Positions 1,086 to 43,975 of a DNA stretch of 64,000 nt are shown one piece after another. How positions within the stretch are numbered: position 1 is the first letter of the stretch; the number at the start of each line of letters is the position of its first letter. A program made the translations under genes and the position numbers. The DNA is taken from positions 124,001-188,000 of the IMG/VR virus record IMGVR_UViG_3300025364_000003; one strand, written 5' to 3'. The notes below the pieces were generated by a model. That model worked only from the letters and a program-made list of their open reading frames with translations, was not told the origin of the DNA and made no database searches.

Positions 1086-1931
1086 ATGAAGAAGACATAT
1101 GGTGGAAATGCTAATAAAAGTGGGATCTATAAAATCATCAACCATTCTAATGGACGATTTTACATTGGTTCCTGTAAGCGCTTTAAGCAAAGAGCATCCG
1201 AACATCACGGAGATTTAAGAACCAATCGACACTCGAATAAATTTTTGCAAAATGATTGGAATAAATGCGGGCCCGATTGTTTTGAATTTTTAGTGTTTGA
1301 GACTATAGAGAAACCAGAAGAAGAACGTCGTTTGCGAGAACAAGCGCTGTTGGACGAATTTTACGATGATCAAGTTCTTTGTTATAATATTGCAAAAACA
1401 ACTGTGGCAATTCCTCGACGAGTTTTTTCAAACGACCCTGATATCACCAAAAAGGTTCTTTCCCAAAAATCTAAGGCAATGTGGGCCGATTCTGAGTTTA
1501 GGGCTAAGATGAAAAAAATATATTCTGACCCTGGATTCCGCAAGAAGCAGTCTGAAAATCAGAAAAAAGTTTCACAAGACCCAAGCAATGGAAATTCGGC
1601 CGAAACTCTTCGAAAAAACATGTCGAATCCAGAAACGAAAGCGAAGTTATCTAAGAAGTTGAAAGAAGCTTGGGCTAGTGATGATGGAAGTCGTCGCAAA
1701 AAGGCTTCTAAAATTGCCAAGAAAGTGTATGAAGCAAACAAAGAAAAAATTACTAAAGCTAGGGTGAAAGCTAGAGCAAAATATTACGGCAAGGTTGTTT
1801 CTCCAGAAGGTGAAGTGTTTGAAATATACAACGCCAAGTCTTTTATAAGAGAGCAGGGTTTTTCGCAGACGTTTTATGACTTTTTAAATGGAAGGTACGA
1901 AGCCTATAAGGGTTGGAAGCGAGTGGAATAG
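1086..1931 (+). CDS. free-standing GIY-YIG homing endonuclease (Seg-like)
   Basis: GIYKI...FYIGS...R...H...LQ.DWNK.G...F.F...E...YN motifs, Lys-rich NUMOD-like repeats, C-terminal YKGW; RBS AAGGAG. Confidence 0.9.
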   Translation: MKKTYGGNANKSGIYKIINHSNGRFYIGSCKRFKQRASEHHGDLRTNRHSNKFLQNDWNKCGPDCFEFLVFETIEKPEEERRLREQALLDEFYDDQVLCYNIAKTTVAIPRRVFSNDPDITKKVLSQKSKAMWADSEFRAKMKKIYSDPGFRKKQSENQKKVSQDPSNGNSAETLRKNMSNPETKAKLSKKLKEAWASDDGSRRKKASKIAKKVYEANKEKITKARVKARAKYYGKVVSPEGEVFEIYNAKSFIREQGFSQTFYDFLNGRYEAYKGWKRVE

Positions 1932-1933
1932 AA

Positions 1934-3619
1934 TTAACGAATTCCGCTTCCCTCTTCAGCTTCAAGCTCGTTAGGTTTTCTAACGAGCTTTTTCTTTTCT
2001 ATATCATGACCCTTCACTTGTCCGACGTCTCTTAAATCGAACCCTGGCATTAGTGCAATTTTTTGCTTTGGAAAGCTTCCTCTTGCATTTGCATAACATG
2101 CTTGTCCAACAATCTCGGTAAAGGCTGCTGGAATTGCTTTTTTGGGCAAGAGTTTAGCATGTGCATTGAAAGCGGCCACTTCCCCTTTGTCACTAAAATC
2201 CACATTAGCCAAGATGTGAACAATATAATCATGAACAGCTCTAAACTTCAGATTTTGTTCAGGTGTAAACACATCATGTTGATTATAATCAGTTGATATT
2301 TTCAAAACGCCAGTTTTTTTAACTTCTTCGGACATTTCTTTCTGCGAATTATAAGGTTGCCCAGGAACAAACTCAACCTTTACCTTGGAAAGCATTCTCT
2401 GATACATTTTCTCAATATGTGAGATTAGTGCTTTATACGATGCAACAGCCTCAGGATCATAATCTGGGAGTTCATCATATGCATCTGCTACTAACTCACA
2501 ATATTTCTTGTAATTTGATAGAACCATTTTTTCTTGCAGGTGTCGGTCAAATCTTGCCTGGCTTTCATTTAGAGAATTGTGGACAACTTTGCCTGAGCGC
2601 TTATCAACAACCTTGAAATTGGGACTCCAAAATTTGGAGTAATCTGAAATGAATTGCTGCGGAAGGTTCCCATAGACAAGCTCAAGCACTTGTCCACGTC
2701 CTAAAACGATGGCAACAATTTTGTTTCGACCACTGAAACCAACTGGTTCTGTAATTCTTAAGGTTGTTTGCAGGCGCCACTCATCTTCTTTTGGAGGGAG
2801 CGCAAATTTTCTATATCTTTGTGAAAGCTTATCAAGAGCTTGTAAAAACTTCTTTTCTCCTTCTATAACATTAAATGTAGGGATTTCATTTTTCTGGTAC
2901 ATTTCTTGTGCAATTTCTCTAGCCTTTTCCCAATCCATCTTTTGTTCTAGGGCGTATTCATACGATTCAATATAGGCTTGCTTCGCCCTACCTTTCTTCA
3001 TGTCAACGTGACCCAAAACTCTTTCCATGGCTGCATCGAAAGTGTCTTGCATCATCGCCTTGTCCATTGGCATTTTTTCACTTGTCTTGAGTTTGTTATG
3101 CAAATTTGTGGCGAAGTCGGACATAAGTTCTTTATAAAAATTTGGGTCAGCATCAATGGTGCCTTTGGCCATTGGCACCGCTAAATCTAAATCTCTAGCA
3201 CCAAAATGTGAGCGTAACGCTTCTGCGAATGCTCGTTGTACAGGCATACGAACATCGTCTTCATCTGCTTTGGCAGATTGGGGCACGAGCTGAGCTACAA
3301 CAATCATCATTCGGCTTTCGCCACCAGTTGACATGGCATCTCTAGCAGAGCTATAGGCAGTTACAATGTTGTCAGTCCAATAGCTACCTTTCAGGGAATG
3401 CATTGACGGGCTTAGAATGGAACTCGCTTCAAGTTCTTCTTCGCCTTTCCAGCGACCTTCGGTTGGGTCTGGAATCATTCCGAGTTGGTAAATTTTTGGC
3501 AGATGTTTTGAACTTGTCCCGTGATACATTATCACGGGTTTTGCCCTCTTCCGCTCAAGAAGAAAATCAACTTCTTCTTTTACCAGTTTTTTGATGATAT
3601 TTTTGAGGTTATCGTTCAC
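1934..3619 (-). CDS. putative internal head polyprotein: leader + ADP-ribosyltransferase-fold domain + second conserved domain
   Basis: Leader LKNIIKKLVKEEVDFLLE; MYHGTS..L..I...G..P...GSYWT ART-like motif; second domain with FRAVHDYIVH...GE..AF..H...FTEIVGQ after SLNE/HLQE sites. Confidence 0.6.
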   Translation of the reverse strand: MNDNLKNIIKKLVKEEVDFLLERKRAKPVIMYHGTSSKHLPKIYQLGMIPDPTEGRWKGEEELEASSILSPSMHSLKGSYWTDNIVTAYSSARDAMSTGGESRMMIVVAQLVPQSAKADEDDVRMPVQRAFAEALRSHFGARDLDLAVPMAKGTIDADPNFYKELMSDFATNLHNKLKTSEKMPMDKAMMQDTFDAAMERVLGHVDMKKGRAKQAYIESYEYALEQKMDWEKAREIAQEMYQKNEIPTFNVIEGEKKFLQALDKLSQRYRKFALPPKEDEWRLQTTLRITEPVGFSGRNKIVAIVLGRGQVLELVYGNLPQQFISDYSKFWSPNFKVVDKRSGKVVHNSLNESQARFDRHLQEKMVLSNYKKYCELVADAYDELPDYDPEAVASYKALISHIEKMYQRMLSKVKVEFVPGQPYNSQKEMSEEVKKTGVLKISTDYNQHDVFTPEQNLKFRAVHDYIVHILANVDFSDKGEVAAFNAHAKLLPKKAIPAAFTEIVGQACYANARGSFPKQKIALMPGFDLRDVGQVKGHDIEKKKLVRKPNELEAEEGSGIR

Positions 3620-3868: not shown

Positions 3869-4083
3869 TTTTCAATTAACTTTTGTAAAATTTGAAACAC
3901 TTCAAGGTCTTCAATAGTCTTATCAATGTCACATGAGAATCCATCAAATGGAATATTGGGTCCACCAAATGCTTTTAGCAATGTCAGGGTCTTTTTGGCA
4001 GCTTCTTTTCTTCTTATGGCTTCATGGTATTGTCTTTCGGACCGGTAGATGCAAACAAGAGCAGTAAATTGAAGTTCCTTCAT
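3865..4083 (-). CDS. small hypothetical protein (LVxxYRxER motif)
   Basis: ORF track; ATGA coupling with def. Confidence 0.6.
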   Translation of the reverse strand: MKELQFTALVCIYRSERQYHEAIRRKEAAKKTLTLLKAFGGPNIPFDGFSCDIDKTIEDLEVFQILQKLIEK

Positions 4084-4646
4084 TTACGACGCTTTCCTTT
4101 TTGGGGTTTTTTGTTTTTTTCATTCTGAATTTGGTAACGCTGCGGAATTGAAACACCGTTGAGATGATCGAATTCATGTTGAAATAACCTGGCTGCCCAT
4201 CCTTCTAGTTGTTTTTCTTTCTCGACGAATTCGCCCTTCTCATTAGGTTCTACCCATTTAGCTGTGATCGTTTTCCAGCGAGTAATTTTGTATCCTTTTC
4301 CTGGTACAGAAAGACAATATTCAGCCATGTCCCATTTGCCATCATCGAGACGAGGCTCAAAGTTTGGGTTAACGTAAAGACGAAACTCGGAACGAAATTT
4401 GTAATCCCAGCCATCGCCATCCATTTCACGGCACAACATCACTTTTTTGAAAAGTCCCACTTGTGGAGCTGCCAAACCAATGCCATCCTCTAACATGCAG
4501 GTCTGTACCATTTTCCAGCCAAGCTCTTCAAAACCATCAAATTTTCCTGATTCGATCTCTTTAGCTTTTATTTTTTTTATTCGTTCCCAATGAAGAATTT
4601 CCATTGGCTTTGTTTTTGACGGGATTTCGTTTAAATCAAAAAGCAT
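4080..4646 (-). CDS. def: peptide deformylase
   Basis: GIGLAAPQVG, EYCLSVPG and QHEFDHLNG, the three PDF motifs; AAGGAG RBS. Confidence 0.95.
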   Translation of the reverse strand: MLFDLNEIPSKTKPMEILHWERIKKIKAKEIESGKFDGFEELGWKMVQTCMLEDGIGLAAPQVGLFKKVMLCREMDGDGWDYKFRSEFRLYVNPNFEPRLDDGKWDMAEYCLSVPGKGYKITRWKTITAKWVEPNEKGEFVEKEKQLEGWAARLFQHEFDHLNGVSIPQRYQIQNEKNKKPQKGKRRK

Positions 4647-5022: not shown

Positions 5023-5493
5023 ATGACAAAGCAGGTGATTATTATAGGAGTTACGGGCCATCGAAAGCTTGATCACGATAAAGATGTTGTTAAAGAAGTG
5101 ATACGTGAAAAGTTACATCAATATGAGGCTGATGCAGTTGTCACTGGAATGGCACTTGGGTTTGATATGTTAGTAGCTGAAGTGTGCCTAGAAGAAACTA
5201 TTCCATTTGTTGCGGCTATACCATGCAAAGACCAAACAAAATTATGGCCGCCACATGAGAAAATACGTTGGACCGAGTTGATGAAAAAAGCTTGGAAATA
5301 TAAAATTGTTTCACCTGGGCCTTTTGAGACTTGGAAACTTTTTGAAAGAAATCGTTGGATTGTTGATCGTTCAAATATTATGTTGAGCTATTGGAATGGG
5401 GTACCCAAAGGAGGAACAGCGGCAACAGTTAAAGAAACCAAGAAATCTAAACGCCCTCACGAGAACCTGTATCCTCTTTGTGAATCCAGGTAA
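5023..5493 (+). CDS. YspA/DUF1273-like SLOG family nucleotide-binding protein
   Basis: IGVTGHR, GMALGFD, AIPC..Q...W, RNRWIVD.S, YWNG..GGT motifs. Confidence 0.85.
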   Translation: MTKQVIIIGVTGHRKLDHDKDVVKEVIREKLHQYEADAVVTGMALGFDMLVAEVCLEETIPFVAAIPCKDQTKLWPPHEKIRWTELMKKAWKYKIVSPGPFETWKLFERNRWIVDRSNIMLSYWNGVPKGGTAATVKETKKSKRPHENLYPLCESR

Positions 5494-21071: not shown

Positions 21072-21556
21072 CGAAAAATAAAAGACTCTCTGTGCAAGAA
21101 CAAGACCAAACTGGAGTTGACGCTGCGGTCGCCCGTGGACAAAATCAAGTTCCTGATGATAAGTTTGAAGAGTTCAAAACCACGATGTCGAGGTTGTACC
21201 AGGCGACACAACAAATTGGTGGAGGCACTGCCGGCTCGGCGCCGACAGCGGCGGCTGGACAGACACAACCACCAAGACAAACTGGCGCTCCGTCAGCAAC
21301 AGGTACGCCTGGTCAGACCCAAAGGGGTGGTTCACAACCTCAAGGTCGTCAAACACCTTTGGAACAACAAATACAACAAAGTATTAGCCAGCCTGCCAAC
21401 GTTCAAGGATTTGTCGAAATAAAAAGAGACGCATCTGATGCGGCATTGACCCATATAGCAAGGCAATTAGGCGTAGAAGAAGATCGGCTCAAGAAACTTG
21501 CAATTGATGCAGACGTTAGGTTGTTAATCAATCCTGATCTTCTTAGGGTCCAGTGA
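21068..21556 (+). CDS. hypothetical protein with Q/T/G/P linker
   Basis: ATGA coupling, GGAG RBS. Confidence 0.7.
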   Translation: MTKNKRLSVQEQDQTGVDAAVARGQNQVPDDKFEEFKTTMSRLYQATQQIGGGTAGSAPTAAAGQTQPPRQTGAPSATGTPGQTQRGGSQPQGRQTPLEQQIQQSISQPANVQGFVEIKRDASDAALTHIARQLGVEEDRLKKLAIDADVRLLINPDLLRVQ

Positions 21557-23024
21557 ATTTTACAAAGCCTGAACTTGTCATAAGGAGCATAATAGCTTTG
21601 CCGGCGAGCATTATACCACCGATGCTGCTAATTGCAGGAACTTTTTGAACCTTTTCTTGTTTGAGCCTCTCGCTAAAGTTTGCGAACACCTTTTTAAAGA
21701 AATGTTCAATTTCTTCATCGTTAATGGGTGCCGTTGTGAATTCCTCACAAAAATATTTTAATTCATTAACTAAATTTACTGTACCATAATGAAGCATTGT
21801 TTTGATCTGTCTCAAAGCAATATCAATTTTAACTCTTTGTTCATCATTTTTTGTAGATGATAAATTTGGCAAGTGAACCAAAACAGAATTTGATACCAGT
21901 GAACGGAGTCGTTTGTCAAACAACTCTTGCACTTCTTCGTGCAAAAAATAATTCTGCCTTTTTTGAAGGATAGATTGAGCTTGGGAAGCAACTGCTGCTC
22001 TCGTGCTTCCGTTTTCGATTGTGCATTCGTTCGAATCTAATCTCACTCGTTCTACCAAGGGCAGTTCATCATATTTTGTAAAAACAACAAGGTCACCTTT
22101 CATGGATGAAACAGGTAAAGAACCACAAACTACCGCAATATCATTGACAATGTTTAGCGAATCAATATCGGAAGGCACTCGCACAGGTTGCACGTCAAGT
22201 AATCCTCGCTCCTGGTTTGCTTTTAAAGTTGCGACGACCTCTTCAGAAAAACCATGAGCAATTATTACCATTGGTATTTTTGTTTCCAAACACTTTGTTA
22301 GTAGATGATCGATTTCTGAAACTTTCTCGACTAATCCATCTACAACTAAAAGCTTACAATTACGGCGTTCCCAGGTATTTTTTTCGAGCATAAATTTGAA
22401 TGGCTTCAATTGAAAAGTGTAGCCTTCTTTTAGTTCAATAAAAAAGTTATCTTGCCGACCATTTTCTACGAAAATGCGACCTTCAAGACCAGCAAGATTT
22501 AAAGCTTCCCAAATGGCTTGAGCCAGAACTTTGTCGGACCCGCAAATTTTATCAACAACATCACGAATGTTGTTAGGGCTAGGAATCGAGGAGTTTTTTT
22601 CAACCTGATTTTTAAATTGATCTACAACTTTATCGAATTGCTGTAGCAAAATTTGGGCATTGGTTTTTTCCATTGAAGTTTTGATCATTTCATTGACAAG
22701 CGTCACTCCGAACAAATAAGCTATATTCGCTCCACCGGCCGAAAGAAGTTCAGACTGGTAACATGACTTGAAAAGTGTAGAAGCCAATGCACGGGTTGTT
22801 CTGTCCGCTGGAGCGAGCTTTTTAAGAAGCTTTCCAATGAAATGGTAGCTGTCCTTTTCAAGAGGGTACAAGTCTTCATGGAGAATTAAATTTATTTTTG
22901 AGTATAACGAATCAATATTGTTGATTCCTGAAAATAACTCTCTGTGAACTTGTTCCTGTGGAATAAATGTGGTTGCTGTCTTCATATTTAATAAATGTAA
23001 ACTCTTTAGAGTAGAAGGTATCAA
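21543..23024 (-). CDS. degenerate GroEL/Cpn60-like chaperonin (start probably 22985)
   Basis: Apical-domain signature LLVVDG.VE.VSEI.HLL......PMVIIA.GFSEEVVATL..N...DIAVVCG; GDGTTT motif absent. Confidence 0.75.
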   Translation of the reverse strand: MIPSTLKSLHLLNMKTATTFIPQEQVHRELFSGINNIDSLYSKINLILHEDLYPLEKDSYHFIGKLLKKLAPADRTTRALASTLFKSCYQSELLSAGGANIAYLFGVTLVNEMIKTSMEKTNAQILLQQFDKVVDQFKNQVEKNSSIPSPNNIRDVVDKICGSDKVLAQAIWEALNLAGLEGRIFVENGRQDNFFIELKEGYTFQLKPFKFMLEKNTWERRNCKLLVVDGLVEKVSEIDHLLTKCLETKIPMVIIAHGFSEEVVATLKANQERGLLDVQPVRVPSDIDSLNIVNDIAVVCGSLPVSSMKGDLVVFTKYDELPLVERVRLDSNECTIENGSTRAAVASQAQSILQKRQNYFLHEEVQELFDKRLRSLVSNSVLVHLPNLSSTKNDEQRVKIDIALRQIKTMLHYGTVNLVNELKYFCEEFTTAPINDEEIEHFFKKVFANFSERLKQEKVQKVPAISSIGGIMLAGKAIMLLMTSSGFVKFTGP

Positions 23025-24272: not shown

Positions 24273-25610
24273 ATGGCCAAGAAAACATTCGTACTTGACA
24301 CAAACATTCTTTTAGCCGACCCAAACGCAATTTTTTCTTTTGAAGAAAACGAAGTTATTTTACCTTTTGTTGTTCTGGAGGAACTTGATAAGCATAAGTC
24401 CAACCAAGGAGAGATTGGCCTCAGCGCACGTGAAGTAAGTCGTCAATTGCATGACTTATTAAAGGTTGCCGATAGACAAACTATGAAACGTGGCATTTCG
24501 CTACCTAATGGTGGCAAGTTGAAAGTTGTTTCTTCCTCAGGACAATCCGATCTTTTTGACAAAGAGCTTGCAGCAGATAAAGCAGACAATCATATTCTAG
24601 CGGTTTGTCTTGGACTGAAAAACAAAAAAGTTATTTTAGTCACGAACGACATGCTTCTTAGGGTAAAGGCAGATGCCTATGGCATTGCCAATGAAAATTA
24701 TAGAAAAAATGTCATAGCCAAAAACATTGAAAGCATGTATTCAGGCATCAGAGAACTGAATGTCACGAAATCTGTATTGCATGAACTTTGGCAAAAATAT
24801 AGAGACAAGGACAGTTTAACGAATTTTATCAATGATAAAATTGATAACTTAAAACCAAATGAATTTGTTCATATAACAAACGGTGGATCAAATAAGCCAT
24901 TTTTAATTCGAAAGCAAAACGATTCAATCAGGTTCGTACCCGAAGGCTTTGAATTGTCGAAAGTGAAACCTCGCAATCTAGAACAGAGACTTGCTTTTGA
25001 TCTTCTTATGGACAATTCTGTCAACCTTGTTTCTATCGTAGGAAGCGCAGGAACAGGCAAGACATTAATTACTCTTGCGGCAGGACTCGAACAAGTTGTA
25101 GACAAAAAGAAATACAAATCATTGCTTGTGTGTCGGCCAGTTCAACCTCTTGGAAAAGACATTGGTTATCTTCCAGGAAGCAAAGAAGAAAAGATGGAGC
25201 CATGGATTGCCCCCATAAAAGACAATCTTCGTTTTCTTCTTACAAGTGATGGAAGAAAGTCTAGGAATAGCGAGAACAGTCTAAATTACTACTTCGATAT
25301 GGGAATCATCGAGGTTGAGGCAATGACCTACATTCGAGGTCGCTCTATTGCCAATGCATATATGATCATTGATGAAGCACAGAATTTGTCAGCTCATGAA
25401 TTGAAAACAATCATTACACGAGTGGGCGAAGGTACCAAGATTGTACTAACTGGCGACATTGAACAGATTGACAACATGTACGTTGATTCTGTTTCAAACG
25501 GACTTGCTGTTGCCGTTGAGAGGTTCAAGGAACATGACATAGCTGGTCATATTACCTTGAAGAAGGGCGAACGAAGCAAGTTGGCAACTTTAGGTTCAAA
25601 AATATTGTGA
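24273..25610 (+). CDS. phoH: PIN-PhoH (PhoH2-like) ATPase
   Basis: FVLDTNILL PIN domain; GSAGTGKT, IGYLPG, RGRS, IIDEAQN, TRVGEG.K...GD..QID motifs. Confidence 0.95.
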   Translation: MAKKTFVLDTNILLADPNAIFSFEENEVILPFVVLEELDKHKSNQGEIGLSAREVSRQLHDLLKVADRQTMKRGISLPNGGKLKVVSSSGQSDLFDKELAADKADNHILAVCLGLKNKKVILVTNDMLLRVKADAYGIANENYRKNVIAKNIESMYSGIRELNVTKSVLHELWQKYRDKDSLTNFINDKIDNLKPNEFVHITNGGSNKPFLIRKQNDSIRFVPEGFELSKVKPRNLEQRLAFDLLMDNSVNLVSIVGSAGTGKTLITLAAGLEQVVDKKKYKSLLVCRPVQPLGKDIGYLPGSKEEKMEPWIAPIKDNLRFLLTSDGRKSRNSENSLNYYFDMGIIEVEAMTYIRGRSIANAYMIIDEAQNLSAHELKTIITRVGEGTKIVLTGDIEQIDNMYVDSVSNGLAVAVERFKEHDIAGHITLKKGERSKLATLGSKIL

Positions 25611-26955: not shown

Positions 26956-29900
26956 ATGGCAAAAGACTTTCGAGCCAGTCAAGTACAAACAACCCAAATA
27001 ATCTCTTCGGGATCTTCCGGCACAAATGCAAGAATTGTTGTCTACCCCGTGGAGAAGCAGTCGGGTGCTAGCCCAAATCAGGGCATAATCGATCCTGACA
27101 AGTTTTCAACTGGTTCTATTGGAGTAGATACATTTATTTTTGTTTCTGGCGGCATCGGCGAGCGGAACACAATCAATAATTCTATTGCTGTATTCGGTGG
27201 TGACGTTCATATTTCTGGTAATCTTACTTCAGATCAACAAATTTTTGGCGAAGGAGAGAGCCTTTTTAGGTTGGGTGTTGTTGATTATGCTACAACTGAA
27301 AACACCTCTTCGAATCCGTTAGTTGCTGGACAAGTTGCATTTCCTGGTAATGAATTTTCCGGGTCTTCATTAACTCTTAGAGCAATCCTTGCCAATACAA
27401 CTGGTTCTGGCATTGCAGCTGTAAAACTTTTTAACCTTGATTCACTAACTTTTGTTGATATTAATGGACCTTCCCAGCAAGAGCTTGCGGTAACTGGTAC
27501 TACGCCAACTCTTGTTGAATCTGTCAATCTATTGAGTGCCTCAGGATTTACGACCGGGTCGTTGGCTCTTTACGAACTTCAGCTGTTTTCAAACAGCAGT
27601 ACAAACACTGCGCAAGTGGGTGGAGGTGAACTTCGTCCTTCGGGCTCATTTACCGCCAACACAATTATAACAAGCAGCGTAACCGTCATATCTGGAAATT
27701 GGATAGATGACAATAGTCGTTTGAGAACCACTGCTTCCGTAGCTATTGATAGTGATGGAAATTTTGCCAATGAGAAAGGTTCCGATAATTATTTTTATGT
27801 TTCAGGAACTATAAATTCTTGGACTACAGCTTCGCTGTTTGGCAATCGCAGCATTTCTGTTTTTGGGGGAGATGTAAGAATCTCTGGTTCTGTAATCGGA
27901 GGTTCGGGTTCAGTAATACAAGACAATTTCCCCGGAGGGACAACTGGAAGTAATTCACCGTTCAACTTTATAGGCGGTGGTGTCAACCACACAATCACTC
28001 CGTTCTCAAACGGCCAGGAGACTAGCACAGCTGGGACAACTGCAAGAAACTTCATTGGTGCAGGTACGGCAAATACTATCACTCAATCTAGCGATTCCGC
28101 TATTGTGGGTGGAAAAAGAAACCAAATTTCCGAAGGGGTTCTTTCGGGTGCATTTATTGGTGCCGGCAGTTCCAACAGTGTTAACGGCAATGATGCTACA
28201 CAAGTAGCCGGTTTTGACAATTCAGTTGGTGGCGATAGAGCATTTGGTGGCGCCGGCGACTCAAATGTTTCAAGTGCTGACGATGGTTTTGTAGGTGCGG
28301 GCGCAAACAACGTTGTCGCACTTGGAGCTAACCGCTCAGCAATCGTAGGCGGAAGCACTAACAATATTCAAAATGGTGATACCGATTCCTTCATTGGGGC
28401 AGGTACTTTTAACACTATTGATGCAAAAAACTCGGCTATTGTAGCTGGCACAAACAACATTGTTGATTTTGATGCAAACCATTCTTTCATTGGCGCAGGT
28501 CAAAATAACCGAATTGATACTCTCGGTGCTACATTATGGGAGGCGATCCTTGTTGGCTCTGGGAACAGAATCCAAGGATTTAGCGCAAATGCTACAAATT
28601 ACTCTGTTATTCTTGGCGGTCAAAGCAATTTGATTGTCAACAGCGCTTCCCTTCTTTATGGATTTGATCTTACAAGTAGTTTTTCTGAGGGGAACACAAT
28701 CCAGTTTGGTAGCCGAATTTCAGGCAAACGCCCATATAGATTTGTAGTTTCGGCTTCCAAAGGTTCCGTTTTTCACGGTGGATTGTCAGGTTCGCTTACA
28801 ACACTAACCGATGGCAGCCCTTATCTTATTGCTGGAACCAATATTACACTCTCAACTGGTTCCAGTGGAGCCGTAACTATCAATTCTACCGGTGGTGGAG
28901 GCGGCGCCGACTCAGATTGGACTTTAACAGGTTCAACACTCTATACAACTTCATCAATTGTAGTTGGTCAACAAACCACTACCAATCCAATTGGAGAAGA
29001 TGTATTTTTCTTTGTTTCAGGCACCTTTGGATCTGGTTCTGCTGTCGATGCAGTTTCCGTATTCGGCGGCGATGTTAGGATTTCTGGTACGTTAGCAGTT
29101 GGAACTGGTTCTGTTTTCATTAAGGATGACTCCATTTTCTTTGGTTCGGCCTCCATTAGAAATGTTGGAGGTCAACTCCAATTCTTTGATGATAATAATT
29201 TAGCTGGACAAACCTTGCAGCAGCTCGCAACTGGTAGTGGGGGAGGAGAAACATCATCTCTACAACAAGCTTATAATCTAAACAATGTTGTTACTACAAG
29301 TGTAGCAAGTGGTTCATTTACATTGTTCGCAAATGACGACACTCATTCTCCATTTGTGATTAGTGCCAGCGCACACTCCACTGGCGATCCTCCGATTATT
29401 GATATAAGAACTGGCACAGGAAGTCCAGAATTTTTCCGAGTCATCGATACGGCCAATAAAGAATTCATGACCATTGAAAAGGCTGGAAATTTTGATAGCC
29501 GTATTAATATGAGGTCAGAGGGTTCTTTTGGTATTTCATATGGCTGGCTCAACAACACAAACGCTGGAATCGGTCTTAACACAGACAATATACGGTTCCA
29601 GGTTAGCTCTGGCGATTCTTTTGAATTCGTTTCCACTGAAGGCGTCGTCGCCTTTACAATTAGTGCTGGAGGCAGCATTGCTGCATCTTCGATTGTTGCT
29701 GGAGTAAGTGTAGCTGTTTCAAGCACGCTCGGTGTTACAGATACCATTCGTGCCAGAGGCGGGCTTGCGGTTGATCCAGGCGCAAACATTAGCGAAACTA
29801 CATATGGCACAGATGCTATCATGGTTGTTTCTGGAGTTGTTGGCGGCAAGGATTCTACTGCAAATTCCACTGCTTTGTTTCTTGGTGATGTTCATATTTC

Positions 29901-31347
29901 TGGCAACCTTACTGTAGATGGTACAGCACCTGGTGGTGGCGGAAGTTCTTTCTTCTATTCAGATACGGCTAACGTTATTGAACAATCAGGCTCGCTTGAA
30001 ATGTCAGGCTCTGGGCTTTTCAAGTCTGGCCTAACTGGTGCCTTAAACGTGCTTCCAGACGGTTCACCGTTTATTGTTGGGGGTGGAGATGTTTCGGTAT
30101 CTTCGGCTTCCAATGGAAGAATTACAGTAAGTGCAAATCTGTCAACATCAAGCAGCCTAATCCAGCTTTCTGTTGTCGATTACACAACTACGACTGCCAC
30201 ATCAAGCAATCCAGCAGCTCTTGGACAAATCATTTTTGACCCAAGTGATTATACGGGTAACATTATTCTAAAATCAGTTCTTTCAGCAGCTTCTTCATCA
30301 GTCACTGCTTCTGTCAGACTTTTCAATGTAACCTCTGGTGCTCTTGTTCACATTGGAGGAGCAGGTCAGACCGAAATTACCTCGGTTGGCACAACTCCAA
30401 CAATCGTTGAATCAGTCAACTTGCGTAATGCAACCAACTTCTCTGCCGGGGCGGCCATTTACGAATTCCAAGCATTCACCTCGGATGAGTCTCAGCTTGT
30501 TACAGTTGGTGGTGGCGAAATCAGGACCAATGGTTTGGTTGATAAGAGCATTCCTATTACTGGTAGCTTGTTGTCATTTGGTATTGCCGACTATGCTACT
30601 ACCAATAGCACTTCCTCCAACCCAGAGGCCGTAGGACAGCTTGTATTTGATCCATCGGAATACACCGGCCCAATTAAACTTAGAGCGGTTCTAGCGTCAA
30701 CCACAGGCTCTGTGACAGCTTCTATGCGACTGTTTAACGTAACTTCGGGCTCGTTGGTTCATATTGGTGGTTCAGGCGTTACAGTGTTGGAAACAACAAG
30801 CGTGACACCGGAGTTAGTTGAATCTGTTAATTTGCGTGACGCCACAAACTTTTCAACAAACCAGGCCATTTATGAACTTCAGCTTTACACAACAACTGGT
30901 TCGCAATCTGCCATTGTTGGTAGTGCTGAGTTTAGAGTGACCGGCTCAGTTACTGCGCCTCCAACAAGACTTAGCCTTGGAAGCTATACTACTACAACAG
31001 CAACTTCATCAAATCCACAAGCTGTTGGTGGTGGTTACTTCGTACCTTCAGAGCATAATACCAACTTGTGTGTTTTCCGAGCTGTTCTTTCTACTACAAC
31101 AGCTTCAAATACCGCATTTGCACAGCTTTATAATATAACATCAGGGGCGTTGGTTCATGTGGGCGGACCAGGAATAACAGAACTTTCTTCGTCGGCCAAT
31201 TCGCCAACCAATGTTGAATCCGTGAACCTGTTTAACGCAACAAACTTTAACCCAGACACAAGCTCTGTATATGAGGTTCGTGTTTATGGAAGTGGCTCGT
31301 CGTCGCCAACAACGACGCTAGTAAATTCAGAACTGGTGTGTTCTTAA
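26956..31347 (+). CDS. large modular fibre/spike protein (1463 aa)
   Basis: Four copies of ~130-aa DY.TT..SSNP...VESVNL domain, four D...FVSG...FGGDV.ISG modules, central FIGAG..N beta-helix repeats. Confidence 0.8.
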   Translation: MAKDFRASQVQTTQIISSGSSGTNARIVVYPVEKQSGASPNQGIIDPDKFSTGSIGVDTFIFVSGGIGERNTINNSIAVFGGDVHISGNLTSDQQIFGEGESLFRLGVVDYATTENTSSNPLVAGQVAFPGNEFSGSSLTLRAILANTTGSGIAAVKLFNLDSLTFVDINGPSQQELAVTGTTPTLVESVNLLSASGFTTGSLALYELQLFSNSSTNTAQVGGGELRPSGSFTANTIITSSVTVISGNWIDDNSRLRTTASVAIDSDGNFANEKGSDNYFYVSGTINSWTTASLFGNRSISVFGGDVRISGSVIGGSGSVIQDNFPGGTTGSNSPFNFIGGGVNHTITPFSNGQETSTAGTTARNFIGAGTANTITQSSDSAIVGGKRNQISEGVLSGAFIGAGSSNSVNGNDATQVAGFDNSVGGDRAFGGAGDSNVSSADDGFVGAGANNVVALGANRSAIVGGSTNNIQNGDTDSFIGAGTFNTIDAKNSAIVAGTNNIVDFDANHSFIGAGQNNRIDTLGATLWEAILVGSGNRIQGFSANATNYSVILGGQSNLIVNSASLLYGFDLTSSFSEGNTIQFGSRISGKRPYRFVVSASKGSVFHGGLSGSLTTLTDGSPYLIAGTNITLSTGSSGAVTINSTGGGGGADSDWTLTGSTLYTTSSIVVGQQTTTNPIGEDVFFFVSGTFGSGSAVDAVSVFGGDVRISGTLAVGTGSVFIKDDSIFFGSASIRNVGGQLQFFDDNNLAGQTLQQLATGSGGGETSSLQQAYNLNNVVTTSVASGSFTLFANDDTHSPFVISASAHSTGDPPIIDIRTGTGSPEFFRVIDTANKEFMTIEKAGNFDSRINMRSEGSFGISYGWLNNTNAGIGLNTDNIRFQVSSGDSFEFVSTEGVVAFTISAGGSIAASSIVAGVSVAVSSTLGVTDTIRARGGLAVDPGANISETTYGTDAIMVVSGVVGGKDSTANSTALFLGDVHISGNLTVDGTAPGGGGSSFFYSDTANVIEQSGSLEMSGSGLFKSGLTGALNVLPDGSPFIVGGGDVSVSSASNGRITVSANLSTSSSLIQLSVVDYTTTTATSSNPAALGQIIFDPSDYTGNIILKSVLSAASSSVTASVRLFNVTSGALVHIGGAGQTEITSVGTTPTIVESVNLRNATNFSAGAAIYEFQAFTSDESQLVTVGGGEIRTNGLVDKSIPITGSLLSFGIADYATTNSTSSNPEAVGQLVFDPSEYTGPIKLRAVLASTTGSVTASMRLFNVTSGSLVHIGGSGVTVLETTSVTPELVESVNLRDATNFSTNQAIYELQLYTTTGSQSAIVGSAEFRVTGSVTAPPTRLSLGSYTTTTATSSNPQAVGGGYFVPSEHNTNLCVFRAVLSTTTASNTAFAQLYNITSGALVHVGGPGITELSSSANSPTNVESVNLFNATNFNPDTSSVYEVRVYGSGSSSPTTTLVNSELVCS

Positions 31348-32627
31348 TGGCTGGTAATAAAATCATAGTTCCTGACATTTTTGTATCTTCAAGAACTGAA
31401 GACACAAATTCAAATGCTTATAGCACCTTTCAAGGCGCCTTTAAAGCATGTTGGGATCACCTAAAATACCTCGAAACTTTAGGAATAACTACGGAAATTG
31501 CACGAAATCATGGGACTGCTGTAAATGGTCGTGGACCAGGAACCGGCTGGTGGGACGAACCAACACGTTTTGGTAACAACGGGTGGTCATGTTTTAGATG
31601 GAATTCAAACACTAATAGAAGCTGGGAATGGTACATGTTTATTCAAAATTGCGATACCGTTGGTCCGACTGGCCCTGGATTACCTGGCTATAGTATTCCT
31701 GGAGCTGGTAGTACTCGTGGATTTCATGTAGCAGCCGCTATTACAATTTCTGGTTCTGTTACATCTAACCCTTGGGGTGGAACCACTGGTTCTCTTGGTT
31801 CTGATGCCAAAGGCAGCCCAGTTTGGATATCTGGTTCAAATAATCACAAGCTTTTTGTTTTTCCTGAAGCCAATGGCGTTAGTGGTGTTTTGGGAGATGG
31901 AAGAACCAGCACCGATCGTGAAGGACTCGCTGTGGATAGCGACGCAGGTGGAAATGCCTCACATCGTAGAATAAGCTTTATTACAGATGATGATTCGTTT
32001 TTATATATCAGAAACAACGGTCAGGCTGATTATTCGATTGGATATTTGGGACTCTACGAGGCTTTTAATCGACAAAATGCTGAAGGAGTTGAGGATACTA
32101 CAACGCCAAACTTTGTTTGTTATTGGGATTTCTCTCCGTCAGACCCATGGGAAGCGTCTAAAGACATTGGAAGTTTGACAGTTGAACCAGGCGACAATGA
32201 ACAAGGGGCTTGTATTTTGCCGCACGAGCAAGATAGCCAAATGAGAGGAATACGACTTTTGACTATACCAGATAGTACAGTTGATGGTGTTCATGTTTTG
32301 AAATACGGACAAAGGCTGACCAAGCCAACGGTTGCATTGCACGATGCAACATTTTCTCTGCGGTCCGCTGGGGTTTTTGAGGCTTCGACACTATATCAAG
32401 GAACAGTCGGTAGGTTTGATCCGACTATGTTACAGGTTTCGAAAGGAATACCAAATTTTGCTCGTATTACAAATACAAGCATACCCAAAATGGCAATAAA
32501 CCCACTTCAAAATAGTTCAAATCTTGCAACATCTTGGATAATTCCATGGCATCCAGATGCTCCATATCTGGAGAGGCGTGATCGATTTGGTGATAGAAGA
32601 AGATACGTTATAACGAGTAGCGGTTAA
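31347..32627 (+). CDS. virion protein, paralogue 1 of 3 (RSWEWY family)
   Basis: Start likely ATG 31347 (TAATG overlap); FRWN..NRSWEWY, NPWGGTTGSLGSD.KG.PVW. Confidence 0.75.
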   Translation: MAGNKIIVPDIFVSSRTEDTNSNAYSTFQGAFKACWDHLKYLETLGITTEIARNHGTAVNGRGPGTGWWDEPTRFGNNGWSCFRWNSNTNRSWEWYMFIQNCDTVGPTGPGLPGYSIPGAGSTRGFHVAAAITISGSVTSNPWGGTTGSLGSDAKGSPVWISGSNNHKLFVFPEANGVSGVLGDGRTSTDREGLAVDSDAGGNASHRRISFITDDDSFLYIRNNGQADYSIGYLGLYEAFNRQNAEGVEDTTTPNFVCYWDFSPSDPWEASKDIGSLTVEPGDNEQGACILPHEQDSQMRGIRLLTIPDSTVDGVHVLKYGQRLTKPTVALHDATFSLRSAGVFEASTLYQGTVGRFDPTMLQVSKGIPNFARITNTSIPKMAINPLQNSSNLATSWIIPWHPDAPYLERRDRFGDRRRYVITSSG

Positions 32628-32628
32628 A

Positions 32629-33867
32629 ATGGCAGGAACAATTAGAGCAAAACTTGACGGATATTTCTTTGGCGAATCCGACGACAACAATGCTAAAGCT
32701 GCGTTTAAGTTTGTTTGGGACCATCTAAAGGAGCTTGAAACACTAGGCATTGTGACCGAAGTCGCTAGAAACAATGGAACTAGCGCAGGCGTAGGCGATA
32801 CTGGCTGGTGGAACGATAGCAATTCATTTGGCAACGATTGCTGGGCCGTATTTCGATGGAACGCAAGTTCCAATCGTTCATGGGAATGGTACTTCTATAT
32901 GCAAGCTGCTGTTAGCTATACAGCGGGAGTGGGTGCACCAGCGTTAGTTCAAGGTGGTACAAGCATTGATGGTTTAGTGATGGCTGCGGCAATTTCTGCC
33001 AATACCGCATCGGGTGTCACGTCTAACCCCTGGGGCGGAACCACTGGTTCTCTTGGTTCTGATACCAAAGGTGATCCCGTCTGGACTACAGGTTCTGTTG
33101 GCGATGGTCTTTTTGTTTTTCCTCGTTCGAATAATTTAAGTGGTTCGCACAATACAAGCAAGCAAAATTTATGGCTAGCTTCTTCTGAAGCTAGCCATAT
33201 GCGGGCTCATGTTATTACTGACGAAGATAGTTTTCTTGGCATTTTTGGCAACCCGGACGCAGAATCTGACTACTCTTCATATTCTATGAGCTTTATCGGA
33301 CCATACAAGCCAAACCAAATTATATCTTCAAGCGTAACCACGCCATTAACTGTTGTACAGGCAACAGAAGATACGCTTGGCATGTTTAATCCAGGCGTAG
33401 AACATGGCGGCACAGCGGGATCTGCTGTTAATTGTGGCGGAGGTATAATTGCAGCAGATAAAATTTCAGTACGAAGTCTTAGAGTTGATTTTCCAAGACC
33501 TAATATAGGCAGTGCATTTTTACCCACTGATCAGTGGGGTTCAGAGATACAAGGACACGTTTCTGGTTCCGATGATGCGAAATGGATTCCTTTAGACCCA
33601 TTTTTATTTGTTCATAATAATGAACCTGATTATCAGGGTTACGTTGGTCAACTTAACAATCAACTAATTAAACTGGTTCGGTATGCACACCTAACACATC
33701 GCTCATCAGATGGAACTAAAATAACCTTTTCTACAAACAGAAACTGGTTTGTTGATTCCATTGGAACTGTTGCAGATAATGTTGTTCTTGTTCCTTGGAC
33801 TGGCTCTGTTGATGTAGGAAAAAATCTTGGGATTCGTGATGGTGTATTTAGTGGGAGCATTGGCTAA
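32629..33867 (+). CDS. virion protein, paralogue 2 of 3
   Basis: Same motifs as 31347. Confidence 0.75.
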   Translation: MAGTIRAKLDGYFFGESDDNNAKAAFKFVWDHLKELETLGIVTEVARNNGTSAGVGDTGWWNDSNSFGNDCWAVFRWNASSNRSWEWYFYMQAAVSYTAGVGAPALVQGGTSIDGLVMAAAISANTASGVTSNPWGGTTGSLGSDTKGDPVWTTGSVGDGLFVFPRSNNLSGSHNTSKQNLWLASSEASHMRAHVITDEDSFLGIFGNPDAESDYSSYSMSFIGPYKPNQIISSSVTTPLTVVQATEDTLGMFNPGVEHGGTAGSAVNCGGGIIAADKISVRSLRVDFPRPNIGSAFLPTDQWGSEIQGHVSGSDDAKWIPLDPFLFVHNNEPDYQGYVGQLNNQLIKLVRYAHLTHRSSDGTKITFSTNRNWFVDSIGTVADNVVLVPWTGSVDVGKNLGIRDGVFSGSIG

Positions 33868-34123: not shown

Positions 34124-35386
34124 ATGGCCGGAACAATCAAAGGAAGGTTGCTTGTATCTTTGTCTAGTAGCGGAGCTGGCGCTGATCAGAAAAACATCGC
34201 CTTATTTTACCGCTCTGTTTATGATTTTCTTAAGGTTCAAGTTGAAACAGAAGGCTATGTTACAGAAATAGCCAATGGCGGAAGCAGCGGAAGTAATATT
34301 AGCCCAGGAGCCTTTTCTGTTTGGCGTTGGAATACCAGTTCTAACAGAAATTGGGAATGGTACATGCTTATTCAGTTTACTTCTGGAAGCACTGTACCTT
34401 CAAGTCGTTTGCCAGTTAATATTGAAGGTTTCGGTAGCACATTTAACAACATGGGTTTTGGCGCCGCTGTTGGCATAAATCACATATCTGGTAGTTATAC
34501 ATTCTTTAATCCATGGAATGGAACTACTGGTTCTTTTGGCTCTGACAGTAAAGGCAACCCTGTTTGGGGTACGACCGCTTCAAATCCTTTGGCAGACGTA
34601 CATCTTTCTGTTATGCCGAGGAGCAATATTAGTGGTAGTAGGATTATCAGTAACGCAGGAGCAACTACCTTTTGGGACGAACGTTCTGATTTAGCTGGAT
34701 TTGCGAGTGGCTTTACGGGTCAGTACAACAATGGACTGATGTTAAACATGTTTGCTGACGAAGACAGCATCATGGTTTTGGTAAAAGATGATGATTCAAA
34801 CGATCACGGTCATATATACATTGGCCCATATGATCCGCTACCAAGTTTGTCTGCTTCAGTTCCCGCCCCACTGATGATGTATAGGAAACTTTGGGCAGAG
34901 TCTAGTGACTTATTTGACAACAGTGACACTATTTGGAGCAATATAAGAGCTGGAACAGCATGTACTGTTTTCCCAATGAGCAACACTCTATCAAGCTCAG
35001 AGCTTTTCCTCCCAACTTGTGGGATAATGCCCACCTTTGCCCCCTTGTTTGGAACTATTCAGCCGAACAAGCAAGCTCAAATTGCTTTGAATACCACTTC
35101 AAGCTTTTATGAGTCAACACCAATTTTTATTCATAGACTCGAACGTCCATTTGGAATGGTTGGTATGTTTAGAAGTCAATTGTTGCGCCTTATTTCTGGG
35201 GTGGGAGGGGATACTTTTCGGTATGCCACTAGTAATAGTGGTTCCAGTGCGCTAAGAAGAGCATTTTTTCCCGTTGATAACATAAGTGAGGAAGCTGGCA
35301 CATATTCGACACCTTGGTCGGGCTCATTGTTGCCCAACACTGGGTCAGGTGTTTTTACAACCATTTCTGGCGGATTCATATTTTAG
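34124..35386 (+). CDS. virion protein, paralogue 3 of 3
   Basis: WRWNTSSNRNWEWY, NPWNGTTGSFGSDSKGNPVW, DEDS motif. Confidence 0.75.
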   Translation: MAGTIKGRLLVSLSSSGAGADQKNIALFYRSVYDFLKVQVETEGYVTEIANGGSSGSNISPGAFSVWRWNTSSNRNWEWYMLIQFTSGSTVPSSRLPVNIEGFGSTFNNMGFGAAVGINHISGSYTFFNPWNGTTGSFGSDSKGNPVWGTTASNPLADVHLSVMPRSNISGSRIISNAGATTFWDERSDLAGFASGFTGQYNNGLMLNMFADEDSIMVLVKDDDSNDHGHIYIGPYDPLPSLSASVPAPLMMYRKLWAESSDLFDNSDTIWSNIRAGTACTVFPMSNTLSSSELFLPTCGIMPTFAPLFGTIQPNKQAQIALNTTSSFYESTPIFIHRLERPFGMVGMFRSQLLRLISGVGGDTFRYATSNSGSSALRRAFFPVDNISEEAGTYSTPWSGSLLPNTGSGVFTTISGGFIF

Positions 35387-42910: not shown

Positions 42911-43975
42911 ATGTCTCTAAACCAGGCACTGATTGCTTTCAAGAAGCTCTTCAATAGGCCACATACGTCCAATGATAAACAATTGCTGGCTAACGAAGGT
43001 TATTTTGTAGGCTTTCAACAAGACACTTCTACCATTTTTGCAGAGCGACCTCCGGCAAACCCGCCGGGTAGTCCTTTCCAAGTAAACACAGGTTCGTTTT
43101 ATGCTAATGATGGCACCACTGAAAAGGTTAGACTAACTTTAGAATTTGTTTCGGGAACTGACACTTCTAATGGTAGACACGGTTTCCAGGCAAAATTACC
43201 TTCCGACTATGAAACCAGTTCTTCCAATCCAAAAGCTGGAACCGGTTTTTTTGTTAATAATCAAGTTCTACAGTTCACAACCGGTTCTGTGCAAATTGTT
43301 ACAGAATTTGTTGGTGGTTCAGGGTACCAGGCACTTCTACGAAATAAAAATTTGCAACAAATTCCGTTGCTTGATCCCAGAGAATGGATTCTTTATGAGT
43401 TTGGTGGTTTAATTTATCAAGAAACGCCGCCAGCCGTTGGTCCGACAAATGAAAACCCAGGGTTTTTAGATTGTTGGATTTATATCGGCGACATGGCTTC
43501 AGATGTAACCAGTTCGGTTTCTGCATCTGGAATTACAACTAGAATTAATGGCACGAACCTCACTACCAATACGCAAGTTATTAATATAAGCGGCTCAATT
43601 GTTTCTGCATCGGTCACAGGCGGAACTGATGTAACTTATGCTTTTGATGCTCTAAAAGCTGATGACAGAGTTCACATACTTTTGTCTGACGGTGGACCTT
43701 TTGAAAAGTATCTTTCCGGTTCCTTCAGGGAGGCAATTTATATTAATAAAATTTTCCCTTCAGCTTCTGTTTGGTATGAGGATAGCTCTAAAACAAAAAA
43801 AATTGTTGAGAAGATTTGGTCATATAATTCAAACAAAACTGTGAATACGATAGTCAGGAACGTATATGCTACTGATGGTACAACAATTCTAACAACCGCT
43901 ACCGACGCAATTACCTATGGCAGTGGCTCTGTTCCACCTATTGCAGAAGTAAGTCGCATAAGAAATATTACATAG
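42911..43975 (+). CDS. putative virion structural protein
   Basis: Context and composition. Confidence 0.7.
   Translation: MSLNQALIAFKKLFNRPHTSNDKQLLANEGYFVGFQQDTSTIFAERPPANPPGSPFQVNTGSFYANDGTTEKVRLTLEFVSGTDTSNGRHGFQAKLPSDYETSSSNPKAGTGFFVNNQVLQFTTGSVQIVTEFVGGSGYQALLRNKNLQQIPLLDPREWILYEFGGLIYQETPPAVGPTNENPGFLDCWIYIGDMASDVTSSVSASGITTRINGTNLTTNTQVINISGSIVSASVTGGTDVTYAFDALKADDRVHILLSDGGPFEKYLSGSFREAIYINKIFPSASVWYEDSSKTKKIVEKIWSYNSNKTVNTIVRNVYATDGTTILTTATDAITYGSGSVPPIAEVSRIRNIT

Follow-up and report, generated by a model that had tools for sequence, protein, structure and literature searches.

An ADP-ribosyltransferase-like module fused to an unnamed, abundant phage domain, with prohead protease-like motifs at the module borders

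A two-module gene of a giant T4-like phage

We analyzed a 64,000-nucleotide stretch of phage DNA (hereafter the window), which corresponds to bases 124001-188000 of the IMG/VR record IMGVR_UViG_3300025364_000003, a 206.5-kb sequence that is estimated to be 45% complete. The subject of this analysis is the gene at positions 1934..3619 of the window. This region holds a single open reading frame (ORF), located on the minus strand, that begins with GTG and encodes a protein of 561 amino acids (P0001); the opposite (plus) strand of the same region is closed by many stop codons. Translation of P0001 is placed upstream of M31 because its first 30 amino acids align with those of homologues that begin at ATG. 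An earlier note, which was made from the sequence alone, had quoted a series of strings from this protein, and each of them was located (IMYHGTS with H33, GSYWT with Y80, A..SSA, the LNE and LQE of the linker, FRAVHDYIVH, GE, H487, and FTEIVGQ). As described below, P0001 almost certainly consists of two modules, an N-terminal module (N-module) and a C-terminal module (C-module), with a short variable linker between them. The coordinates of the modules, their motifs, and the neighboring genes are given in Table 1.

When the whole protein and its two halves were used as queries in word-index searches, relatives of three kinds were recovered. Six proteins are full-length orthologues of P0001 (51-66% identity), ∼25 proteins of 300-370 amino acids match just amino acids 5/31-352, and more than 150 proteins, mostly of 200-240 amino acids, match just amino acids ∼361-545. 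The earlier note had proposed two independent domains that meet at the linker and had suggested a search for stand-alone homologues of the C-terminal one. The stand-alone genes, the syntenic relatives, and the other fusions described below bear out this division, and the domain boundary is exact, as stand-alone N-modules end at amino acid ∼352 and stand-alone C-modules begin at amino acids ∼361-364. When the whole-protein sequence was compared with solved structures, no match was obtained.

The same locus differs in its content among related phages. Some syntenic relatives carry the N-module alone in the same place, where a peptide deformylase gene is followed by two to three small ORFs and then by the N-module gene; in another syntenic relative, the C-module alone adjoins peptide deformylase. 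Based on these differences, we conclude that in P0001 two modules, each of them mobile on its own, have been fused within a variable island. In polyvalent proteins, which are encoded by phages or conjugative elements, a single polypeptide combines unrelated effector domains (2 to 15 of them) that come from a shared pool (Iyer et al. 2017, PMC5512222). P0001 corresponds to this description in that it has two unrelated modules, both of which recur with other effector domains (ART-PolyVal, LPD23, GNAT, NUDIX, and 2H). Both modules also occur inside proteins of more than 1,000 amino acids. One fusion orthologue (P0005, 641 amino acids) has an extra C-terminal extension of ∼85 amino acids after its C-module, at the start of which there are two further [LI]xE motifs, L-V-E followed by S and L-M-E followed by K.

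The source phage contains a gene for a T4 gp21-type prohead protease (Peptidase_S77; E 5.8e-23, with a score of 78 bits that exceeds the cut-off), which is located at G000:C1:117261-117686, ∼6.3 kb ahead of the window, and a gene for a T4 gp23-type major capsid protein (G000:C1:191295-192956; E 4e-65), and it is therefore assigned to the giant T4-like myoviruses. In addition to this record, an identical copy is present on an IMG/VR contig of 460,987 bp, and a genome of ∼461 kb is unusually large for the T4-like lineage. No similar or near-identical DNA was found among cultured phages.

Table 1. Features of the P0001 gene and its neighbors, by position in the window (aa, amino acids; pLDDT, predicted local distance difference test; pTM, predicted template modeling score)
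Feature	Positions	Strand	Details
Whole coding sequence, P0001	1934..3619	-	561 aa; GTG start at 3619; stop codon 1934-1936
N-terminal leader	3554..3619	-	aa 1-22; predicted amphipathic helix ending L20-L21-E22, then RKR; helix 3-25, pLDDT 76-84
N-module, predicted ADP-ribosyltransferase (ART) fold of H-Y class	2564..3553	-	aa 23-352; AlphaFold model pLDDT 90.1, pTM 0.82
ART motif 1, MYHGT (H33), strand 1	3515..3529	-	H33, G34, T35 at least 90% conserved; aligns to YHGT of KptA/Tpt1
ART motif 2, GSYWT (Y80), strand 2	3374..3388	-	Y80 invariant in 29 sequences; model strand 79-82
D119-E120-D121, just after strand 3	3257..3265	-	invariant in 29 sequences
Helical insert splitting the ART fold	2801..3262	-	∼155 aa (aa 120-273); seven helices, pLDDT 92-98
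C-terminal ART strands	2666..2767	-	aa 285-318; R288, G297 invariant; N299 near-invariant
Linker	2531..2572	-	aa 350-363; L350-N-E352, variable 8-aa spacer, L361-Q-E363, then K
C-module, unnamed phage domain	1985..2530	-	aa 364-545; PHROG 3170 E 1.5e-20; model pLDDT 92.9
Invariant H463-D464-x3-H468, central helix	2216..2233	-	H108, D109, H113 in domain numbering
Further invariant polar residues E480, H487, E502, Q506	2102..2182	-	N456, R460, Q519, K520 lie outside this span
Acidic, poorly conserved C-terminal tail	1937..1984	-	aa 546-561; pLDDT 61-78; variable in orthologues
GIY-YIG homing endonuclease	1086-1931	+	281 aa; PHROG 314 E 1.9e-21; Pfam GIY-YIG
Small ORF just upstream of P0001 gene	3635-3868	-	77 aa; sub-threshold T4 Gp23 model match, E 9e-4, 19 bits
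Peptide deformylase	4080-4646	-	188 aa; PF01327 E 4e-27
YpsA-like SLOG protein	5023-5493	+	156 aa; PF06908 E 4e-8; PF02481 E 8e-8
GroEL-like chaperonin	21543-23024	-	PHROG 5725 E 7e-18
PhoH-like protein	24273-25610	+	PHROG 2765 E 8e-115
Series of large ORFs (longest, 1,463 aa)	26956-31347, 31338-32627, 32629-33867, 34124-35386, 40924-42894, 42911-43975	+	no PHROG match

Folds and conserved residues of the two modules

The earlier note had assigned a His-class ADP-ribosyltransferase (ART) fold to the N-terminal part of P0001. This assignment is upheld by the AlphaFold model, by structure searches with Foldseek and VIA, by a profile match to Tpt1/KptA, and by the conservation of H33 and Y80, and the modeled N-module very probably adopts this fold. 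The model was built on an alignment of 29 sequences, and the same 29 sequences were used for the conservation counts. In the VIA search, the top match of the model was KptA (9ld3; Z 8.7, root-mean-square deviation 2.4, 83 residues aligned), followed by TreX (Z 7.5), Tpt1 (7.3), PltA (7.0), pertussis S1 (6.9), DarT (6.7), PARP16 (6.7), and Arr (6.0), and ∼35 of the 50 best VIA matches were ART chains. Foldseek against the PDB gave local probabilities of 0.9-0.99 for Tpt1/KptA and PARP15, with E-values that are weak because of the large helical insert. The ART fold is split by this insert, as the VIA matches to ARTs cover only model residues 26-∼120 and ∼285-318. Among structural neighbors in the atlas were clusters of viral DarT/PARP, DUF3990, DarT, PARP, and ART-PolyVal.

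At the level of sequence, the profile of the N-module family matches eight Tpt1/KptA entries exactly at YHGT...L..I...GL.P (E 0.004-0.9), and weak matches to the PTS_2-RNA and PARP models were seen in 11 and 10, respectively, of the 29 N-module members. A Pfam scan of P0001 and these 29 sequences placed none of them in an ART family, and ART-PolyVal (PF18760) likewise matched neither P0001 nor any of the 29. The Tpt1/KptA models remained below their thresholds (PF01885, best E 0.082; NCBIfam, 23.7 bits in a relative against a cut-off of 239).

The N-module has the first two residues of the H-Y-[EDQ] clade, a His on strand 1 (H33, conserved in at least 90% of the sequences) and an invariant Tyr on strand 2 (Y80), both of them in predicted strands. 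It is therefore placed in the His-Tyr class, whereas KptA is of the His-His class. D119-E120-D121 is the best candidate for the third, acidic catalytic position by its spacing in the sequence rather than by superposition, and it is favored because Stenotrophomonas phage RAS14 also keeps this acidic cluster, as M-D-E-D. The helical insert that follows is a possible target-recognition module.

Comparison with known ARTs indicates where the N-module stands among them. Tpt1/KptA is its best structural match and its only profile-level sequence match; unlike Tpt1/KptA, the N-module matches the NAD lobe only (chain residues 91-180), lacks the RNA-binding lobe, and has Tyr instead of His on strand 2. 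PARP, DarT, Arr, and the diphtheria-type H-Y-E ARTs share its fold (Z 5-7) and have G-x-Y-[WF] in strand 2. Where PARP has its catalytic Glu, as the penultimate core strand begins, the N-module seems to have K/R instead, and the acidic cluster after strand 3 would, by its spacing, be placed as in Arr. ART-PolyVal/Tox-ART-HYD2 (PMC5512222) has an H, Y, acidic active-site pattern like that proposed for the N-module and also occurs in multi-enzyme polypeptides, and one relative (P0034) joins a weak ART-PolyVal match to a P0001-type N-module. P0001 differs from ART-PolyVal in its lack of a PF18760 match and in its 155-amino acid helical insert, and its two modules stand at the small end of the polyvalent range. 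Distant ART relatives of the N-module are also found inside giant ORFs of other IMG/VR contigs, namely L105:2218-5415 (1,066 amino acids, in which Pfam found no match) and L106:1-6813 (at least 2,271 amino acids).

The C-module belongs to a large family that has not been given a name. A profile search of 1.84 billion representatives returned 6,103 clusters (50% identity) at E ≤ 0.001, of which 5,219 reach E ≤ 1e-10. The C-module is ∼100 times commoner than the P0001-type ART. Most members of this family are small stand-alone proteins, and many others are parts of larger proteins of up to 2,464 amino acids. Fusion to ART-PolyVal is seen in P0204 (34.8 bits, over the Pfam cut-off, together with KTSC) and more weakly in P0202; other fusion partners are NUDIX, LPD23, GNAT, and, in a 1,874-amino acid protein, 2H phosphoesterase with a SprT-like domain. 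Scans of the C-module against Pfam, NCBIfam, and PHROG returned no functional name (PHROG 3170 is annotated as function unknown), and none of 68 members had a Pfam match, peptidase models included. Matches in cultured phages are mainly to Mycobacterium cluster C phages. Gp102 of the Mycobacterium phage Rizal, a Bixzunavirus, which falls in PHROG 3170, is a true homologue of the C-module (35% identity over amino acids 377-524) and lies among head and tail genes. It differs in its length of 433 amino acids and in its flanking regions, and Rizal lacks an S77 protease. In a phage lineage of ∼60 kb (L067-L093, e.g. L073:631-3309), the C-module is found in the middle of proteins of ∼850-1,150 amino acids that have a conserved H-D-Q-x-T-H-G-N-W upstream of it, no [LI]xE at the module border, and no S77 protease in the genome.

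About fifteen residues of the C-module are invariant (Y381, N456, R460, H463, D464, H468, F475, G479, E480, H487, A498, E502, Q506, Q519, and K520), and twelve of these are polar. From these sequence data, it is reasonable, as the earlier note had suggested, to regard the His/Asp/Glu set as compatible with a metal site, and our guess is that the C-module may be a metal-dependent hydrolase, possibly one derived from a zincin. Among solved structures no good counterpart was found (Foldseek E ≥ 0.29; best VIA Z 3.9). The named recurrent neighbors in VIA are all zincin-like metallopeptidases, namely ArdC, abylysin/jannalysin, 3e11, and an ImmA-like regulator of Mycobacterium tuberculosis (Z 2.2-3.5); those in Foldseek are IrrE, selecase, and PPEP-2; and those in the atlas are ArdC/M78, ImmA/IrrE, DUF2201_N, and Zn_peptidase_2 clusters (template modeling score, TM, 0.31-0.48). 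When the C-module profile was compared with solved structures, just designed helical repeat proteins were matched, and we take these matches to be spurious. HD-domain and ferritin-like readings of the His/Asp/Glu set were dropped, as neither fold appeared in any structure list.

The C-module resembles zincin-like proteins (the HEXXXH variant, ArdC, and ImmA/IrrE) in having two His residues four positions apart on a central helix with a Glu on the next helix, an α/β N-lobe, and a hub-like fusion pattern. In contrast to zincins, it has Asp rather than Glu after the first His and many additional invariant polar residues; the HEXXH of zincins is replaced by H-D-x-x-x-H. We regard a link between the C-module and zincins as a lead and not as a finding, and consider it doubtful.

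If this lead were correct, the C-module could be a derived zincin-like peptidase of the polyvalent-hub type that cleaves the linker of its own protein to release the ART, or that attacks host proteins. This explanation would account for the fact that the named neighbors in three structure searches (ArdC, ImmA/IrrE, selecase, abylysin, 3e11, DUF2201_N, and Zn_peptidase_2) are all zincin-like, for E480 on the next helix, for the His spacing that the C-module shares with the HEXXXH variant of polyvalent-protein metallopeptidases (PMC5512222), and for hub-like fusion partners such as ART, GNAT, NUDIX, 2H, and LPD23. It is nevertheless quite improbable. The motif is HDxxxH instead of HExxH, no Pfam peptidase profile matches, and when the C-module family was compared by hhalign with an ArdC-type metallopeptidase from a relative, the probability was 0.5%. 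In addition, the invariant set of four His and two Glu with Asp, Arg, Asn, Gln, and Lys residues is richer than a simple zincin site, and most members of the family stand alone and thus have nothing to self-process.

L/I-X-E motifs at the module borders

The prohead protease of T4, gp21, cuts after L/I-X-E (PMC9026906). The T4 internal proteins have capsid-targeting leaders of 10-19 amino acids that are removed at such sites, and the ART Alt of T4 is packaged and loses a piece from each of its ends (PMC9026906). In P0001, L/I-X-E sites close a short putative propeptide (E22) and are found at putative processing borders (E352 and E363). The total number of [LI]xE motifs in P0001 is not enriched (4 found versus 5.7 expected from composition). 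Three of these four motifs, however, are located at the end of the leader and at the two ends of the linker, within ∼9% of the length of the protein; the fourth, I289-T-E291, lies inside the fold and is followed by Pro.

These motifs are largely kept among the fusion orthologues. The L-x-E of the leader is present in six of seven, which are all six whose recorded N-terminus reaches this site. At the second linker site, [LIV]xE followed by K is found in 7 of 7, and at the first linker site L-x-E is found in 4 of 7, with a spacer of variable sequence between the two sites. Distant homologues of the N-module have leaders of 8-12 amino acids that end in L-x-E followed by A. The same arrangement is found in the cultured, S77-positive phage RAS14, where a 12-amino acid leader ending in LNE and followed by A precedes the ART core; we found no paper on virion proteomics of this phage. 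Stenotrophomonas phages RAS14 and CM1 are cultured carriers of the N-module homologue WAX21574.1.

The junction before the C-module was also compared across its family. Among 276 family members, [LI]xE occupies this position in 99, and Glu is missing from it in 97, which are of the N-P or A-K types. For the 71 stand-alone C-modules with an N-terminal leader ending in [LI]xE, the median leader length is ∼16 amino acids. When the comparison was limited to IMG/VR records with a completeness of at least 80%, the C-module was preceded by a strict [LI]xE in 10 of 10 records with Peptidase_S77 versus 0 of 6 without it. Fusions to MuF or portal domains, which would show head association, were absent from Pfam scans of 25 larger C-module proteins and one N-module relative.

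P0001 has several features in common with T4 Alt and the internal proteins. It is an ART-like protein of a T4-type phage with genes for a gp21-type protease and a gp23-type capsid, it has a short leader that ends in L-x-E, and a further L-x-E lies near the C-terminal border of its ART. The two differ in that Alt belongs to the R-S-E clade (PMC5512222) whereas the ART of P0001 has His and Tyr, in that Alt lacks a second enzyme, and in that Alt has been proven to be packaged and cleaved, which for P0001 is a prediction from sequence. The earlier note had read P0001 as a two-effector polyprotein that is divided into separate enzymes as the head matures. Packaging of P0001 and its cleavage into two enzymes by a gp21-type protease make up a coherent but circumstantial hypothesis, to which we give somewhat less than even odds.

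The accessory island and the fate of P0001

Peptide deformylase, which is encoded in the same island as P0001, is the syntenic anchor of this island in all relatives examined. The GIY-YIG homing endonuclease gene is convergent with the ART fusion gene, and the stop codons of the two genes are 2 nucleotides apart. In three syntenic relatives (L003, L005, and L006), this endonuclease gene is missing from the same place and a fused C-module is lacking as well, and in L008 a GIY-YIG gene is two genes away from a stand-alone C-module; traffic of homing endonucleases may have shuffled the modules. The small ORF just upstream of the P0001 gene has a match to the Gp23 model that was also flagged by the genome search and is probably spurious. 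A Cpn60 gene is close to the ART gene in relatives L003 and L005. The large ORFs that lack PHROG matches may encode virion proteins or other lineage-specific proteins. The YpsA-like SLOG gene is kept in the same island of relatives L003 and L008. Proteins of this type are part of the NAD/ADP-ribose network of jumbo phages, and the viral ones are predicted to act on signals of the cyclic ADP-ribose type (PMC9503650). No Macro or NADAR gene was found in the 206-kb record (∼45% of the genome).

The presence of this SLOG gene nearby bears on an explanation in which both modules serve one pathway, with a KptA-like ART making an ADP-ribose derivative or adduct and the C-module hydrolyzing or remodeling it, for example to destroy NAD-derived immune signals. 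KptA/Tpt1 proteins are the best ART matches of the N-module, and the C-module is separately fused to ART-PolyVal, NUDIX, and 2H phosphoesterase, all of which belong to NAD/ADP-ribose chemistry, as this explanation would predict. Against this, Y80 is a mark of the H-Y class and not of the H-H-h class to which KptA belongs, the N-module has no counterpart of the N-terminal RNA-binding lobe of Tpt1, and the modules occur mostly apart, with the C-module far outnumbering the ART. We consider a common pathway improbable. A predicted complex of the N-module with the C-module scored 0.00, which amounts to no verdict and is evidence neither way.

A pairing of the two modules could also resemble a toxin and its antidote, with the C-module restraining or reversing the ART. 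ARTs are often paired with reversing enzymes (PMC9503650), and the modules are fused here and occur in the same island in relatives. This arrangement is very improbable, as relatives have the ART but no C-module at that locus, thousands of phages have a C-module but no P0001-type ART, and the structure searches with the C-module revealed no likeness to a Macro, ARH, or NADAR fold.

The explanation that we favor, with a probability of about 0.55, is that P0001 is a natural fusion of a divergent H-Y ART and a metal-enzyme-like module that is packaged and cut in the manner of T4 Alt and the internal proteins. The conserved [LI]xE motifs at the leader and at both ends of the linker match the specificity of gp21, and a life history like that of Alt and the internal proteins is for this reason the most likely one. 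In such a scheme, P0001 would be targeted to the prohead by its leader and cut after E22, and after E352 and/or E363, and two separate enzymes would be injected with the DNA. The first would be an NAD+-dependent ART with a His-Tyr-acidic site (H33, Y80, and probably one of D119, E120, or D121) that would ADP-ribosylate a host macromolecule, with its helical insert placed where other ARTs carry a target-recognition loop. The second, with its HDxxxH, E, H, E, Q set, would be a metal-dependent hydrolase and may be a zincin-like enzyme that has diverged strongly. We infer the catalysis, the target, the packaging, the cleavage, and the chemistry of the second module.

Several observations weigh against this explanation. 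The 10 of 10 versus 0 of 6 comparison is confounded by descent, since a single 60-kb lineage accounts for five of the six negatives and the positives are T4-like phages that are related to each other. Moreover, F-N-E is present at the junction in L027, a jumbo relative that is nearly complete and lacks S77. Cellular KptA has an inter-lobe linker that is similar to the segment before YHGT, and the first L-x-E could therefore be structural. The gene lies outside the structural module, in a variable accessory island with peptide deformylase, the SLOG gene, and the homing endonuclease. Matches to the T4 late-promoter consensus TATAAATA are not enriched (4 found versus 2.1 expected) and none is near the gene, so that no inference on its timing is drawn. 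As for the modules themselves, residue 291, on the strand that is expected to carry the third catalytic residue, is E/Q/T and residue 300 is K/R in the N-module, and the C-module has no profile link to any metallopeptidase, its structural likenesses being weak (Z ≤ 3.9, TM ≤ 0.48).

Some of these observations would be expected if P0001 were instead a cytoplasmic two-domain enzyme that is neither packaged nor cleaved, with incidental or structural [LI]xE motifs and a leader that is the N-terminal helix of the ART. The place of the gene in an island away from the head genes, the total motif count, the KptA-like segment, and a link with the protease that may reflect shared descent alone are all in keeping with such an enzyme, and it is a serious possibility that we rate at well under even odds. 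It would leave to chance that three of the four motifs are placed exactly at the module borders, that C-modules of protease-lacking phages have N-P or A-K in place of x-E, and that the leader lengths fit the capsid-targeting sequences of T4 (PMC9026906).

A more specific form of the favored explanation, in which P0001 would be a two-effector precursor, concerns the C-module. This module would represent a new class of metal enzyme that is, at best, remotely derived from the zincins. In T4-like phages, it would be loaded into the head by way of a short capsid-targeting leader, freed by the gp21-type protease at the conserved [LI]xE-K junction, and injected as an early effector; P0001 would be cut at this junction too. 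We consider this form unlikely.

More than 40% of jumbo phages have ARTs, and packaging of these proteins is common (PMC9503650); the ART found here is therefore an expected find; multi-effector polypeptides are also already known (PMC5512222). What our results add is an ART family that has no name and contains a large helical insert, the fusion of this ART to a very abundant domain that is likewise unnamed, and [LI]xE junctions that suggest processing of the T4 type. The C-module represents one of the larger unannotated families of phage proteins and is a good target for studies of structure and activity. The co-variation of [LI]xE with S77 provides a cheap sequence rule to predict which proteins of uncultured T4-like phages are packaged in the head and injected. 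If the C-module is indeed a packaged new class of enzyme, then delivery in the manner of T4 Alt and the internal proteins would extend to thousands of uncultured phages and would include a new enzyme family.

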